Shown here: positions 15,882 through 24,326 of the stretch, in pieces
Position numbering within the stretch: the first letter of the stretch is position 1
How the letters are laid out: each line of letters begins with the position of its first letter
Notes under the pieces: generated by a model
Databases searched by the model: none
What the model was told of the DNA's origin: nothing
The model's input: only the letters and a program-made list of their open reading frames with translations
From: Adineta vaga
Taxonomy: Eukaryota > Animalia > Rotifera
Length of the DNA: 64,000 nt
NCBI GenBank assembly: GCA_021613535.1
Contig: CP075497.1
Span: 10,850,001 to 10,914,000 of the forward strand
Direction: 5' to 3'
Made by a program: the position numbers and the translations under genes

Positions 15882-16725
15882 ACAAATCTTTATCAGGGAT
15901 ATAAAAACGAACAATTGATATATTTTCTCTCAGAAAAAAAATTATCTCATGTCTTCTTTCATTTCTTTTACTTTATTTTTCTTGTGCAATCCTTATATTT
16001 TCTTCGTACTTTTATTATATTTTCTATGTACTCGTAAGAAAAACAAAATGTATTATGACCGAAAACTAGAAACAAAAATAAAAAAGGTTTTTTAAAAACT
16101 AAGTCAAATGATTTGATTGAGATAATGAAATGCATGATGTATATCTTACGAAGACTTTATTTCAGTTTGCTTGTAGTTTAGAAAAATACAATGAATAGTT
16201 AAAACTAATGATTACTTAGTTAATCTAAACATCTATGTTTAGAAGTATGCTTACGTTAGTTCAAGAAGGTATATAGAATAGAAGTTGAAGAGTACATACT
16301 TCACGATACTTTGTATGTTTTCATTTGAAGTTCTGATTTCATATTTCTTTTTCAATGATTTACGCTCAATTGAAAACGAGTAATTATTATTTTATTTGTA
16401 ACAGTAACATAGCGTATATCTTCGAAATGATCGTTGTTCAATATATTTTAATTCTGCTTCGACAGAATTAATATCATGAACAATAGTTATACGCATAATA
16501 GCGCCATCTATTGAACGAAAAATATACGTGATTCGACATCAGAAGGGTAAGCAAATTGCATAACACATAGAAAAAATGGCTACTATATTCTTGCCATTGT
16601 TTGACTCATACATTATCGGCTTAGTTATTGTGTAAGGAAAGAAAGAGACAAGTGTATTTATTTTATTCTGGAAGGAATTTATTTCTTCGATATTAAACTT
16701 TAGTGGGAAATATTTTTCATTAAAG

Positions 16726-19700
16726 ATGTTTGCTGCATCCTCAAAACCGTCTCAATCAACGCCAACACCAACACCAACAACTTTTAATGAACGTCTCAAT
16801 GAGCAGCTTATTAACTGCTTAAATGTTCAAACAAACGTGATACAAAATTTGGCACAATATTCACAACATATTTCGTTACAACTATTCGAAATTAAAGTAA
16901 TTTCTTGTTTGTCTCATTTGAATATTTTTTTATCAAGGTTATTCTTTGTCTTCGTTTGTAGAATGTTGTTGAAATGCTTTCAAATCGAGTATTAGCTCTC
17001 CAACAACAACAACAAATGCCACATCCTCATTTTGCACCAAATCAATATGCAGCATCTTACTATCCAAACTATATGTCTCATCAACCAATACCAGTTTCTC
17101 ATCCACCACCAACTTCTCATCATCATCCTCCTCCTACAATGCCATCAGCTGTCCATTCACAACAACCTGTACCTGTGCGTATGCCAACTATGAGTACGAC
17201 AATAGCTAGTTCGCATCAACCATTTTTCACTCCGACTACCGTTACAAATCAACAATCAACATTACCGTCGACTGTTTCAACATTTCAATTCGGAACAACA
17301 GGAACAGTACCAGCATCAGCACCATCAAATCAAACAACAATGACAAATTCATTACCGCCAACAACAACAACACCAACACAATCTATCTTTACAAATCCAC
17401 CAAAATTTACTATGCCTGATACGACTACTAAACCGTCATCAACAATATTTCCGGCGACAACGCCAACAAAATCTATCTTTACAAATCCACCAAAATCTAC
17501 TATGCCTGATACGACTACTAAACCGTCATCAACAATATTTCCGGTAACAACGCCAGCAAATACTGCTACAAATGAAAAACCGCCAACGAACAGTAAGACA
17601 TACTTTATTCTTACAGTTATCTCTATATAATCCAAAATACTTTTGTTTTCTTTTTTAGCTCCATTTTCATTTGGCACTACAAGTAGTTTGGCATCAATTT
17701 TTGGTACAGGAAATTTTCCTTCTACTACCTTAGCTAATTCAACAGCAAAACCAGAAACTAATGCTGATGATGATGTCGAAGGCGGTGGTGAAGATGATTC
17801 TTATGAACCCAATGTTTCATTCAAACCTATTGTTACACTCTCAGCCGTCGAAGTTAAAACAGGAGAAGAAGATGAAAATGTCTTATTCTGTGAACGTGGC
17901 AAGCTCTATCGATTTGATTCAGCAGCAAATCAGATGAAAGAACGTGGTATTGGTGACATGAAAATTTTACAACATAAAACAAGAAAAACATGCCGAATCT
18001 TGATGCGTCGTGAACAGGTATTGAAATTATGTGCTAATCATCAAATTACACCACAAATGGAATTGAAACAACATCAAGGTTCTACTAATGCTTTCCTATG
18101 GTCAGCAACAGATTTCGCCGATGGTGAAGCTAAACATGAAACTTTATGTATACGATTCAAAACCGATGAACAAGCGAAAAACTTTGCCAAAGTATTTAAT
18201 GAAGCTAAAGAAATGAATTCGACAAGCACAGGAGATTTACCTTCTGTTGGAAAAATTTCTTTAAATGACGAAACCAAATCGAAATCAACTTCAAATGATG
18301 ATGGTAAAAGCAAATTTTTTCGTTGTTTCTTTTTCTCTCTAATATTTTAATTTCTTTTCATTTTAGATGTGATTTCTATTGGTGAAATTAAACCATCAGC
18401 AGAACAAATTGATCGAGCGAAAAAACTTCAATTACCATCAACATTCTTTTTGTATGAAAATAAAGAACCATGTAAAGGTTGTCCAGGTTGCAAAGAAGAT
18501 ACACCACCAGCTACCTCAAACGAAAGTATGTCATACAGTTTGAGAAATGATCGAAAGAATTCTCACAGAAGATTTGTAAATTGATAATTATTCATATTTA
18601 TTTATTTAGATACAACTACAACAAATGCCGCTAAAAACGATACAAAATCTTCAGGTAAAATCATTATTTTGAACGAATTTAATGGCTATTTCTGTAATGT
18701 TTCTCTAGCTCCACAAACACCATCGACAGCACCAGTATCTAAAACACCGTTAAGTTCAAGTGAAAATATCAAATTTTCTTTTGGAAATGCGGATAAATCT
18801 CAATCACAAATACAAAAACAAACATCAACAACTAAAGACGAAAAATCATCCGTCGAAACTACAGTATCAACTGCAAATGCCACATCACAATATGATAATA
18901 AGCCATCTATTTTTGGAAATCTTAATGGCACTTCTGGTTCATCAATTTTTGGAAGTTCTACTCCTACAAATAATACAAATGGTTCTGTTTTTGGTGGTAG
19001 TGCATCATTGAAGCCATCGAACAATGCGAATAGTGGATTTTCGTTTCCTGGCTTTGGTGCTGCACCAGCAGGAACACCATCAAGTGGATTTCAATTTTCC
19101 ACACCAGCTGCAACAGCAACAACTACAGCTTCAGATAAAACTTCCACATTTTCATTTGGAACTGCCGCTAGTGGTACCGCAAATCCCAACTCATCGTTTT
19201 CATTTGGAGCATCAAATGATAAACCCTTATTTGGAAATTCACCAAAATTCAGTTTTGCTGATTTAGCCAAACAATCAAACACAAACGATGATAAATCAAC
19301 AAGTAATGGTTCTGATCAACGAGGTAGGAATATAAATTGAATTCTTATTCAACTATTTATTCTCTTCTCCTTTTCTGTGTACTTATTCAGTCTTCGCTGG
19401 TCAAGGTTCACTTATCTTTGGCACTAATTCAGCTAATACTACAACAGCAACGACAGGAAATAATCATGAAGATGATGATGGTGGTGAAGGTGGTGGTGAA
19501 GATGATTCTTATGAACCCAATGTTTCATTCAAACCCATTGTTACACTTTCAGCTGTCGAAGTTAAAACCGGAGAAGAAGATGAAAATGTCTTATTCTGTG
19601 AACGTGGCAAGCTCTATCGATTCGATGCTGAAGCCAATCAAATGAAAGAACGTGGTATTGGTGAAATGAAAATTTTACAACATAAAACAACAAAAGTCTG

Positions 19701-19944
19701 TCGAATCTTGATGCGTCGTGAACAAGTATTGAAATTATGCGCAAATCATCAAATCACACCTCAAATGGATTTGAAACAACATCAAGGTTCTGAAAATGCA
19801 TATGTTTGGTCTGCTATGGATTTTGCTGATGGTGAAGCTAAACATGAAACTTTATGTATCAGATTTAAATCAAGTGAAGTAGCAAAACGATTTGAAAAAC
19901 AATTCAATGATGCCAAAGAAAAAAATGCTAATGGTCAGCAATAA
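16726..19944 (+). CDS. RanBP2/Nup358-like nucleoporin, shortened: coiled coil, two RanBP1 domains, IR/M-like motif, FG repeats
   Basis: Two Ran-binding domains (FKPIVTL..VKTGEEDENVLF..KLYRFD..MKERGIG..RILMRREQVLKLCANH), AKKLQLPSTFFLYENKEPCKGCPGC resembling the RanBP2 internal repeat, and FSFG/FG repeats. Confidence 0.85.
17381..17560 (+). repeat. Near-perfect 2 x 90 bp coding tandem duplication (SIFTNPPK.TMPDTTTKPSSTIFP.TTP..)
   Basis: 17381-17470 and 17471-17560 differ at only a few positions. Confidence 0.95.
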
Positions 19945-20013
19945 AAAACAACTAAACTACAAAATTTAATCAAACATTTTCTGTTACTCTTATTCTAAAT
20001 TGATATTACCTAT

Positions 20014-21185: not shown

Positions 21186-22014
21186 AGAAAAAAAGAGAAA
21201 CGATGGAGACAGAGAAAAGCATAGATTATCACAAAAAATATCAAGCAAGACGGTTTCGATGCATCTATTACTAGCATTTATACATATATATTTGTTTCTC
21301 GTTTGCTCGTTTTTTTCCTTCTTCCCTCTATCTACGTAGAAAAACCACAGCATCATTATTTATTCCTATCATAGTTATCGCTTCCATCAGCATCATTTCT
21401 TCTGATATGTTTATTGAGAATTTTTACTTGGTATACGTTCGTGTTGGCTATTTTTTTCTCTTTTTCTCTCATCTTTACATATCTATTCTCGTTTACTTCG
21501 ATAATCGAACTTTAGCAGCTGCAACAGGTTATAAACTTGTTGTTTTTCTTATTATTACTAATGTTAGAATCAATGATACTAGCTATGTTGATCAGTTGAT
21601 GAAATCGTCCGAGAAAGAAATTTATGTCGACACGTCGATTACAAAACCTTTTGTTGGTGTCAATAAGAATTGGCATATCTAAACCACATAAAGAAATACA
21701 TATTTTTTCCTATATTGTATTTTCTAGATCATCCTCCTAAGCGATATTTCATCACTTTCGTCGTTATCGTCGCATCCAAGAGAGAAGAATAGAAGCGCGA
21801 CGAATTGAAGATTCCCCTCCTGCTCAGGTTCGTTTTTTTTCTTCTTCTTCCATATTATTTCTTATGTTTATTTTACCTAAGAAAACGACTCGCTGTTTTC
21901 CTTTGCTTACAAAGGATACATCGTTTACTTTGCATGTTTCTTCCTAACATAAATAAATAATATTGTTTTTCTAGTACTTGACTTGTCATTGTTCAATATT
22001 GAATATCAATCGTG

Positions 22015-23801
22015 ATGCATCTTAACTGGCTATTCATCAGTTGTCTGCTTGTTCTTTTATCTGTTGGCTTGACAACAAGAACAGTCGATGCTAGCAAGAA
22101 GTCTAAGGAGGAGAATGAAGAAGAAGAAGAATCGCGCTCAACCGATTCTGATACTGATTCAGACGACGATGATGATGATGATAACAAAAAAGGTAAGACA
22201 AAAGTTCTTTTTTTTATCATTCTTAAAACCAAATCCTAAAAGATAAATAAAAGAAACAGATTCAAGATCGTATTAAGCGAATTAATTTTCTTCTTAAATA
22301 ATTTCTTTGTTTTTCAATCTATTTTTTTATTGATTTCTATGTGATCGTGTGATTGTTCTTTCTCTGTTTTGCCTGCTGATATTTCAGTAGTGTTTGTGCC
22401 ACGTGAGAAAGCTTCAATTTTTCTCTCATACAATGAATGCGTACGACGAATGAATTGTGGTTCATCACGGAAGGAGGAATGCAATGAAGAATGTGCTGTT
22501 GGTAAGTAAAAATGAATTTAATTTCGATGATATTTAATTAAAACTATTAATATGTTTATTTATTTGTTTTATTTAGGCAATACAGAAGAAGAAATGGAAG
22601 AATATACGGAAATCTTCGAACATATTGAAGAGTATCGATCAAATACCAAACGTTCATCATCAAAAAAAGGAAATAAAAGTGAAGACGAAACAACGGAATC
22701 AGAGAGTGATAGTGATGATAGTGATGGTAGTTCAACAGCATCGAATGCTGAAAGTGATGCTAGTAGTGAAGAAGAAGATGAACCACCAGCTAAAACGAAA
22801 AAATCACCATCGTCAACAACTGCTAAACAATCAATAAAAAAGAAATAAATGTCAAAGAAACATCCCGCGTGAGAATGATACCCTCTGATTTTTTCCTTTT
22901 TTTTAAATCTCTTTTCCTCCCCAATTGTTCATTTTTTGTTAGACTAGAGCATTTTTGTATTTCTTCTTCTTCTTCACATATCCAGTTGCCAACGTAATAC
23001 TCACAACCTATTTCTCCGTCTTGATGTGCTGTCTTTCAATTGTTGTATGTTGGTTTTTTCGTTTATCTCTTTCACTAATGCCAGCTTCATACGATCATTC
23101 TCTCTATCTCAACTGACTAAATTAGACACACAATGTCTTTGACAAATATATTCAAATGTATACATATCGACATCTCTACTATACATATATAAATATTGAT
23201 ATATATATTTCTTGAACTTATCAATTTTAGCTGTCTTCATCTCACGTGATCGTGCTTCCATCTTTTTATCCTACAACGAATGTATGAGGAGGATGAACTG
23301 TGGTCCAACAAGACGCGAAGAATGCAGCGAAGAGTGTGCAGGCGGTAAGATAATTTTCTATTTATCTTTGATATATCATATTTCATTTTGTTTTCCATAT
23401 TAATAGGAAACACGGAAGAAGAAACCGAAGAATATGCTGAAGTCTTTGAAAGTCTAGAAGATTATCGTACTGACAACAAGAAAGGTCATCGACCCAAACG
23501 TAAAAATGACGTTTCAGAATCTGATTCTGATAGTGATTCGGATTCTGACTCGGATTCCGACAGTGATTCCGATACAGATTCGGATACAGACGAAACTTCT
23601 GACTCTGAAAGTGATTCTGAAAGTGAAACAGACTCAGACACGGATTCAACTTCTGATAGTGATGACGAAGAAGAAAGTGACAACAAAGAAGAACAAGAAG
23701 AAGCAAAAGAATCAGGAAAAAATACAAAGAAGAAAAGTAAAAACGTCCAATCAAGCAAACAGACAAATCAAAAAGGTGGTAAATCAAAACGCCATAATTA
23801 A
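22015..23801 (+). CDS. Secreted acidic protein with two alternative Gla-domain-like 3' modules: exon 22015-22192 joined to either 22388-22501 + 22577-22848 or 23231-23344 + 23407-23801
   Basis: Signal peptide MHLNWLFISCLLVLLSVGLTTRTVDA; all junctions GT-AG and phase 1. The two modules are paralogous (VFVPREKASIFLSYNECVRRMNCGSSRKEECNEECAVGNTEEEMEEYTEIFE vs VFISRDRASIFLSYNECMRRMNCGPTRREECSEECAGGNTEEETEEYAEVFE), each with its own stop. Confidence 0.8.
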
Positions 23802-24326
23802 ACAATGATCATATTATGTTCTGAAATCTCACCTTTTCTTTCTTTTCATAAACATTTTTAAACCATTAACAAAACAAACTTTAATACGCTCATACAACAT
23901 TTATATTCTTTGGTGTTTTATACACACTTTTTATTCTTGCACAATGCTTTCGTATTTGGAAATACTCACATAGAAAAAACAACATTTCTATACGTTTCGT
24001 TTCTGTACGATTTCTTTGGAAATGCAAGCATATTTTCTGTCACACATCTAGTTTTAGTTGCTTATTTTCTTTTCCTTTATTTTTGTGCACAACTTCTATT
24101 TCTGTTTCGTGAGTGAGTGAGTGATAACAATTTCTTTTCTTTTTTTTTGTTCATTTCTATTTTTTTCTTTCCAATACCTTGAATTTATAAAGTTTTAAAG
24201 TTCTCCCGAAAGAGTAGCAGGTATACAACAATTCTAAAGGACGTATTATTGTTCCTTTATTTAGATAATAGAAGACGAGAAAAAAAAACACATTAAAAAA
24301 CGTGAAGAAAAAGAAAAATATTTCGT

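Follow-up and report, generated by a model that had tools for sequence, protein, structure and literature searches.

A rotifer gene with mutually exclusive 3′ exon pairs encodes candidate gamma-glutamyl carboxylase substrates with a docking-like motif

Conserved gamma-glutamyl carboxylase (GGCX) and VKOR occur in many invertebrates with neither a clotting cascade nor bone, which raises the question of what the carboxylase acts on in such animals. Outside chordates, the established GGCX substrates are the venom peptides of cone snails only. The Drosophila enzyme is active and carboxylates human factor IX and prothrombin, with no Gla protein described from the fly (PMC12112360), and its action on human substrates suggests that protostome substrates may use a vertebrate-like signal. 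An earlier note, made from sequence alone, had proposed that a gene of the bdelloid rotifer Adineta vaga encodes a secreted protein of this kind. The gene lies in a 64-kb stretch of AT-rich animal DNA with short GT-AG introns (C6:10850001-10914000, hereafter the window), which belongs to a genome that we searched as 100.8 Mb in six pieces. Is its product a plausible substrate of the rotifer carboxylase?

The gene model (Table 1) was derived from contigs of four RNA-like public runs (X1, X2, X5 and X6, from three studies) aligned to window positions 21700-24100. The joints 22501→22577 and 23344→23407 are of the GT..AG type and were seen in 4/4 runs, and the joint 21827→21975, also GT..AG, was seen in X1, X2 and X6, X5 having no coverage there. 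In all four runs there are contigs whose first 17 nt are the end of exon 1 and which then run on into exon 2a at 22388. The end of exon 1 is likewise joined to 23231, the start of exon 2b, by contigs in X1, X2 and X5, and the corresponding joint in X6 skips 1039 nt; where the match of a contig to exon 1 stops at 22192, the letters after it are the opening ones of exon 2a or of exon 2b. Isoform a is polyadenylated near 23170 (a loose end in X5), upstream of the exon 2b acceptor. Exon 1 is thus spliced to either 2a or 2b, with one isoform ending before the other pair begins, which makes 2a/3a and 2b/3b mutually exclusive 3′ exon pairs behind a common signal-peptide exon. The gene is expressed and abundantly transcribed, and its products are two small, very acidic and putatively secreted isoforms of ~187 and ~228 amino acids, the signal-like peptide having been judged by eye. 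A separate signal-peptide exon for unit b was sought between 22849 and 23230, where none is phase-compatible, and the RNA contigs show that exon 1 is shared.

Table 1 Exons of the gene (window positions) and the type II paralogues in the genome
Feature	Position	Strand	Description
5′ untranslated exon	21729-21827	+	Contig starts at 21726-21729 in three runs; joint 21827→21975
Shared exon 1	21975-22192	+	ATG at 22015; signal-like peptide and acidic spacer; ends in phase 1
Exon 2a	22388-22501	+	Docking-like motif 22390-22425, then C-x5-C, E-E-C-x-E-E-C
Exon 3a	22577-23170	+	Conserved Glu run 22579-22635; acidic Ser/Asp/Glu tail; stop 22846-22848; 3′ UTR
Exon 2b, alternative to 2a	23231-23344	+	Docking-like motif 23233-23268, then C-x5-C, E-E-C-x-E-E-C
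Exon 3b	23407-23889	+	Conserved Glu run 23409-23465; R-P-K-R 23490-23501; (Asp-Ser)n/Glu tail; stop 23799-23801
Type II paralogue (L015)	C1:5663839-5663931
Type II paralogue (L016)	C4:7538090-7538179

From its ATG, exon 1 encodes a hydrophobic N-terminus with a plausible cleavage site (by eye only) and then an acidic stretch, in keeping with the signal-like peptide and acidic segment that had been described. Exon 2a begins with V-F-V-P-R-E-K-A-S-I-F-L and exon 2b with V-F-I-S-R-D-R-A-S-I-F-L. Exons 3a and 3b, which follow a phase-1 intron, have N-T-E-E-E-x-E-E-Y-x-E-h-F-E in common (N-T-E-E-E-M-E-E-Y-T-E-I-F-E in 3a), and each of their acidic tails has a basic end, followed in exon 3b by a 3′ UTR beyond the stop, with contigs reaching at least 23889-24100. 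The peptides quoted in the earlier note are all found, on translation of the exons, where it had placed them. Its view that two modules stand in one protein was mistaken, as the RNA contigs resolve them into alternative isoforms. Its related claim of an internal site free of furin cleavage holds insofar as no R-x-x-R lies between the motif and the Glu cluster, but not in having the modules follow one another in one chain.

According to PMC12647623, the residues anchoring the factor IX (FIX) propeptide are −17 V, −16 F, −10 A, −7 I and −6 L; Tyr415, Tyr425, Leu426, Val430 and Phe431 of human GGCX contact −17/−16 and −10, and −6 Leu occupies a separate clamp-B pocket. At precisely −17, −16, −10, −7 and −6, both rotifer isoforms carry V, F, A, F and L, respectively, and the recognition site of the carboxylase (hydrophobic −17, Phe −16, Ala −10, hydrophobic −7, Leu −6) is likewise matched in all relatives of the window's subfamily (type I, see below) that were seen. 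The first Cys of the module follows the motif at a distance of only 4 residues.

The principal alternative to carboxylation, which we regard as quite possible although less than probable, is that the isoforms are non-carboxylated, secreted acidic proteins, which could be calcium-binding or intrinsically disordered and possibly phosphorylated on their Asp-Ser tails. A-x-x-F-L, together with the four Cys and the Glu run, would then make up the core of a small helical domain stapled by disulfides, and the resemblance to a docking site would be coincidental. The chance rate of the motif cuts both ways here. The bare F-x5-A-x3-L spacing, on which the earlier note had leaned, is indeed present in both modules, but the six-frame translation of the window contains 11 instances versus 11.2 in shuffles, a chance frequency that makes the pattern uninformative alone and that favours coincidence. 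On the other side, both isoforms, like every type I relative seen, match all five structurally defined contact positions, and the strict seven-position propeptide consensus was observed twice, both times in this gene, versus 0.045 expected per 128,000 codons, so that it is expected ~40 times less often than it is found in the window, the two matches being paralogous and not independent.

The module has relatives against which these positions can be compared. Searching 1.84 billion representative proteins with an exon-2 profile recovered 31 clusters, and the named members are all "hypothetical" or "unnamed" and come from bdelloids (Adineta, Rotaria, Didymodactylos) and from Neoechinorhynchus agilis. 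As judged by these searches, the module defines a family that has no annotation and is restricted to Syndermata (bdelloid rotifers and an acanthocephalan). The A. vaga genome holds six modules at four loci, two each on C6 and C3 and one each on C1 and C4, and two of the paralogues are annotated as I4U23_019393 and I4U23_001790. The C3 ohnologue (L012) has the same plan as the window gene, with one signal exon and two exon pairs. In N. agilis (L025:3001-5733) the intron positions are the same and both modules fall in one predicted reading frame, an arrangement with which a second two-module protein from another data set (P0034) agrees. Four weak genome matches to the exon-2 profile (L021-L024, E 0.35-8) were rejected on inspection.

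The module comprises ~55 residues, with h-F-h-x4-A-S-x-F-L, four Cys and 9-10 conserved Glu. In an alignment of 25 spliced sequences from bdelloids and the acanthocephalan (A3), A(−10)/A9, F(−7)/F12, L(−6)/L13, the four Cys, G-N-T and five to seven Glu are invariant (25/25), three further positions (E34, E42 and E50) are 88-96% Glu, and the E:D ratio of the core is 246:25. The E-x-x-x-E-x-C motif to which the earlier note had drawn attention is borne out, E-x3-E-x-C being kept in 18/25 sequences (E at column 30 in 18/25, E at 34 in 24/25 and C at 36 in 25/25). The expectation that Phe, Ala and Leu would all be conserved in relatives is only partly upheld: A(−10) and L(−6) are invariant, but F(−16) is kept in the window's subfamily only, with L/I/V there and then Y/F in the sister subfamily and varying residues in the acanthocephalan homologues.

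The window's subfamily, type I, is characterized by h-F-h-x-R-[ED]-x-A-S-x-F-L, E-E-Y-x-E-h-F-E and long acidic tails, and it alone carries the full vertebrate-type docking motif with V/F at −17/−16. Type II, to which the modules on C1 and C4 belong, is marked by [LIV]-[YF]-S-x-S-K-A-N-x-F-L together with E-E-H-x-E-L-T; the recognition-site positions retained there and in the acanthocephalan homologues are −10, −7 and −6 only. The lack of a conserved F(−16) beyond one subfamily speaks for the non-carboxylated reading. With V/F at −17/−16 restricted to type I, folding and not docking could be what conserves A-[SNH]-x-F-L across the family.

The enzymes on which carboxylation would depend are both encoded in the genome, as the earlier proposal presupposed. 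GGCX appears intact and is located at C3:5567342-5569376, where profile searches found an HTTM domain (142.8 bits) and a VKGC lumenal domain (63.8 bits) and where G-L-K-K and G-Y-S-W-D-M-M segments are recognisable. Three loci are VKOR-like, one of them strong and single-exon (C2:4634083-4634484, 101.8 bits) and two weaker and split (C4:8110683-8111202 and C1:5035351-5035876); the latter two resemble an ohnologous pair. When aligned to the solved human chain, the rotifer GGCX has F, Y, L, A and W at the positions of human Y415/Y425/L426/V430/F431, as does a second bdelloid GGCX cDNA contig, and its predicted propeptide-binding residues are by this alignment kept or conservatively changed. The presence of GGCX and the conservation of its exosite are thus established here, as are the gene model, its expression and the conservation of the family. 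No canonical Gla domain turned up when the genome was searched with Pfam in six frames, a search in which control genomes could not give a signal either, and this leaves the GGCX without an obvious substrate. An intact carboxylase with a conserved exosite and no canonical substrate in the genome counts against the non-carboxylated reading.

Two further GGCX sequences were noted. One is a metagenome contig (L028:1-2430) that encodes a bdelloid GGCX without introns, as a cDNA would, and has a frameshift in a ten-A run near 1678, and the other is a separate contig of animal source with an uninterrupted 776-aa GGCX reading frame (L038:30-2357). A complex prediction of the bdelloid GGCX, supplied in two pieces of the frameshifted cDNA (L028:7-1677 and L028:1682-2353), with exon 2b scored 0.00, which gives no verdict and counts neither way.

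We then asked what known proteins the module resembles. The exons were searched one by one, and full-length predicted proteins of relatives (P0007, P0009, P0049 and others) served as a proxy for the joined product. No match to the Gla domain (PF00594) was returned by hmmscan at E≤10 from five exon translations or ten full-length spliced relatives, and the UCMA and osteocalcin families were absent from the Pfam matches of the ten spliced relatives at the same threshold, so that the membership in Pfam Gla or UCMA families envisaged in the earlier note did not materialize. Pfam yielded sub-threshold noise only, on exon pieces and spliced relatives alike (e.g. UCR_hinge, E 0.063). The family profile had 0 matches at E≤10 among all PDB sequences, and a feature search of the ESM Atlas gave no usable match. 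AlphaFold2 modelled the 65-residue core, from 12 and then from 25 sequences, as four short helices with a pLDDT of 58-59, which is too uncertain for fold assignment, and a Foldseek search of this model against the PDB returned nothing below E=5. A confident match to some unrelated fold, which the earlier note had named as a counter-argument, is accordingly not among the results of the PDB profile or Foldseek searches. No description of a rotifer Gla protein was found in the titles and abstract openings of the literature searched.

The absence of homology to any Gla family in these searches supports the non-carboxylated reading, as does, at low confidence, the AlphaFold model, in which the four short helices run across the module and the motif adjoins the first Cys; the module is probably folded and helical, if this low-confidence model is a guide. 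Glu is favoured in helices too, and the invariant Glu residues are therefore not specific evidence for carboxylation. There is also a precedent in periostin, for which a motif-based prediction of carboxylation was reportedly not borne out (PMC4537219).

Comparison with characterized Gla proteins places the gene closest to matrix Gla protein (MGP) in layout: it is MGP-like in its putative internal, uncleaved docking site, yet by sequence belongs to no known Gla family. Both are small, secreted and acidic, in both the docking site, putative in the rotifer, is internal and not removed, and both have a C-x5-C disulfide loop adjoining Glu residues, as well as Ser-rich acidic segments that could be phosphorylated; furthermore, N-A-N-T-F-I of MGP resembles the rotifer family motif A-N-x-F-L. 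In contrast to MGP, with which it has no detectable sequence homology, the rotifer module has a second Cys pair (C-x3-C) and far more closely packed Glu, and it comes with long Asp-Ser/Glu tails and a choice of two 3′ exon pairs.

With the Gla domain proteins (PF00594; coagulation factors, Gas6 and PRGPs), the rotifer module shares the propeptide consensus at −17, −16, −15, −10, −9, −7 and −6, E-x3-E-x-C and, in the window's subfamily, a short E-E-x-x-E-h-F-E string. The exon boundary in F9 is in phase 1 and falls at −17. As in the rotifer gene, F9 has its signal peptide and its docking motif on two successive exons, the second of which opens with the motif (PMC6599346). The module differs from these proteins in having no Pfam match, no basic cleavage site after the motif, C-x5-C and C-x3-C instead of the C-x4-C of Gla, and an intron that splits the Glu cluster. 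It also lacks the A-N-x-F-L-E-E omega-loop (Glu 6, 7), A-[SNH]-x-F-L being followed by S/T-Y and not by E-E, and the aromatic stack.

Osteocalcin (BGP) and UCMA/GRP are likewise small, secreted and Glu-rich, and the docking motif alone is what they have in common with other Gla proteins; osteocalcin shares the C-x5-C loop, and the docking motif of UCMA has the same F-x5-A-S-x-F-L pattern. No homology to either was detected, their propeptides are cleaved at a basic site, and the Gla region of UCMA is without Cys. The recognition sequences of Conus peptides are not known to follow the vertebrate F/A/L consensus, whereas the rotifer motif is vertebrate-like. Gamma-carboxylated Conus peptides, the only well-established protostome GGCX substrates (PMC12112360), resemble the rotifer proteins in being lineage-specific, short and secreted, and differ in being venom peptides.

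Weighing this evidence, we put at roughly 45% the probability that the type I isoforms are carboxylated by GGCX; they are plausible candidate substrates with an internal, MGP-style docking site. The reading is plausible and rests on more than the motif, as it also draws on the machinery, the exosite, the conservation of Glu and the secretory routing (signal peptide by eye). The mechanism of docking and carboxylation that we infer as the most likely is the following. In the ER lumen, the motif would bind the hydrophobic exosite of the rotifer gamma-glutamyl carboxylase via −17, −16, −10, −7 and −6 and would remain uncleaved, as in matrix Gla protein. The Glu cluster downstream of the motif would be converted to Gla, and the end product would be a calcium-binding secreted protein.

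Type II proteins differ from the window isoforms at their C-termini, which end in K-x-[DE]-L in 23/29 complete sequences. The variants are K-T-D-L, which predominates, K-T-E-L, K-D-E-L, K-N-E-L and K-K-E-L, and only a few match the strict PROSITE form [KRHQSA]-[DENQ]-E-L; the isoforms of the window lack such an ending. The R-T-D-L C-terminus of MANF resembles type II K-T-D-L, and the likeness to MANF/CDNF-type ER retention (R-T-D-L / K-T-E-L) holds for the paralogues on C1 and C4 with their orthologues, not for the window isoforms, and involves no sequence relation. As these ends, seen for example in P0049 and P0009, are ER-retrieval-like, the small Glu-rich type II proteins are probably kept in the ER, the compartment in which GGCX works, a conclusion drawn from the C-terminus only.

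We consider it very unlikely that the gene encodes a processed-peptide precursor, in which cleavage at basic residues (K-R in isoform a, R-P-K-R in isoform b) would separate the 4-Cys module from its acidic tail and the freed module would be secreted to serve in signalling or protection. Such processing would suit the layout of signal peptide, acidic spacer, conserved core and variable tail, the furin-type R-P-K-R and its R-P-R-R counterpart in the C3 ohnologue, and K-R after the module in isoform a. However, conservation of the basic sites does not extend across the family (alignment columns 53-65), the ER-retrieval-like C-terminus of the sister subfamily misfits a released hormone, and no similarity to known peptide families was found with Pfam on the spliced relatives or in the ESM Atlas; moreover, processing of this kind is compatible with carboxylation and not exclusive of it. 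It is about as improbable that the module binds GGCX as a regulator or pseudosubstrate and not as a product, which would apply most to the K-T-D-L subfamily held in the ER beside the enzyme and would accord with the frequent K-x-[DE]-L ends of type II and the invariant A(−10), F(−7) and L(−6), but the window isoforms lack a retrieval signal and have long tails of the secreted type, and no small ER-resident regulator of GGCX is known.

A wider proposal can be made, which we advance tentatively and with some doubt: the Syndermata family may be the missing substrate set of protostome GGCX, in which type I would be secreted Gla proteins with uncleaved vertebrate-type docking and type II the first ER-resident vitamin-K-dependent proteins or GGCX regulators. 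The F/A/L recognition code would then predate the protostome-deuterostome split and serve functions beyond clotting or bone. The gene is a concrete candidate in a culturable animal, abundantly transcribed and with a docking motif of vertebrate type, and through it the ancestral role of vitamin-K-dependent carboxylation could be put directly to the test. Should its products not be carboxylated, they would be a warning that an F/A/L motif and a Glu cluster are insufficient to call a Gla protein.

Some minor features of these loci may be recorded. The signal-peptide exon of type II (L015:1260-1300; L016, reverse strand, 1290-1330) begins directly at the splice acceptor and has no in-frame ATG, and the public models of type II proteins begin with M-V-D-[LI]-x-E-R; the start codon therefore seems to lie at the very end of the upstream exon. 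In the window, RNA contigs carry a 6-nt TTCTTC insertion at 22960, in the 3′ UTR of isoform a, and contigs of different studies show scattered single-base changes between 22035 and 24067, both of which are probably strain or allele differences. Upstream, a gene on the forward strand (16700-19950) contains Phe-Gly/Ser-Thr-rich repeats and two similar domains of ~100 residues that resemble Ran-binding domains (by eye only), which suggests a nucleoporin-like product.
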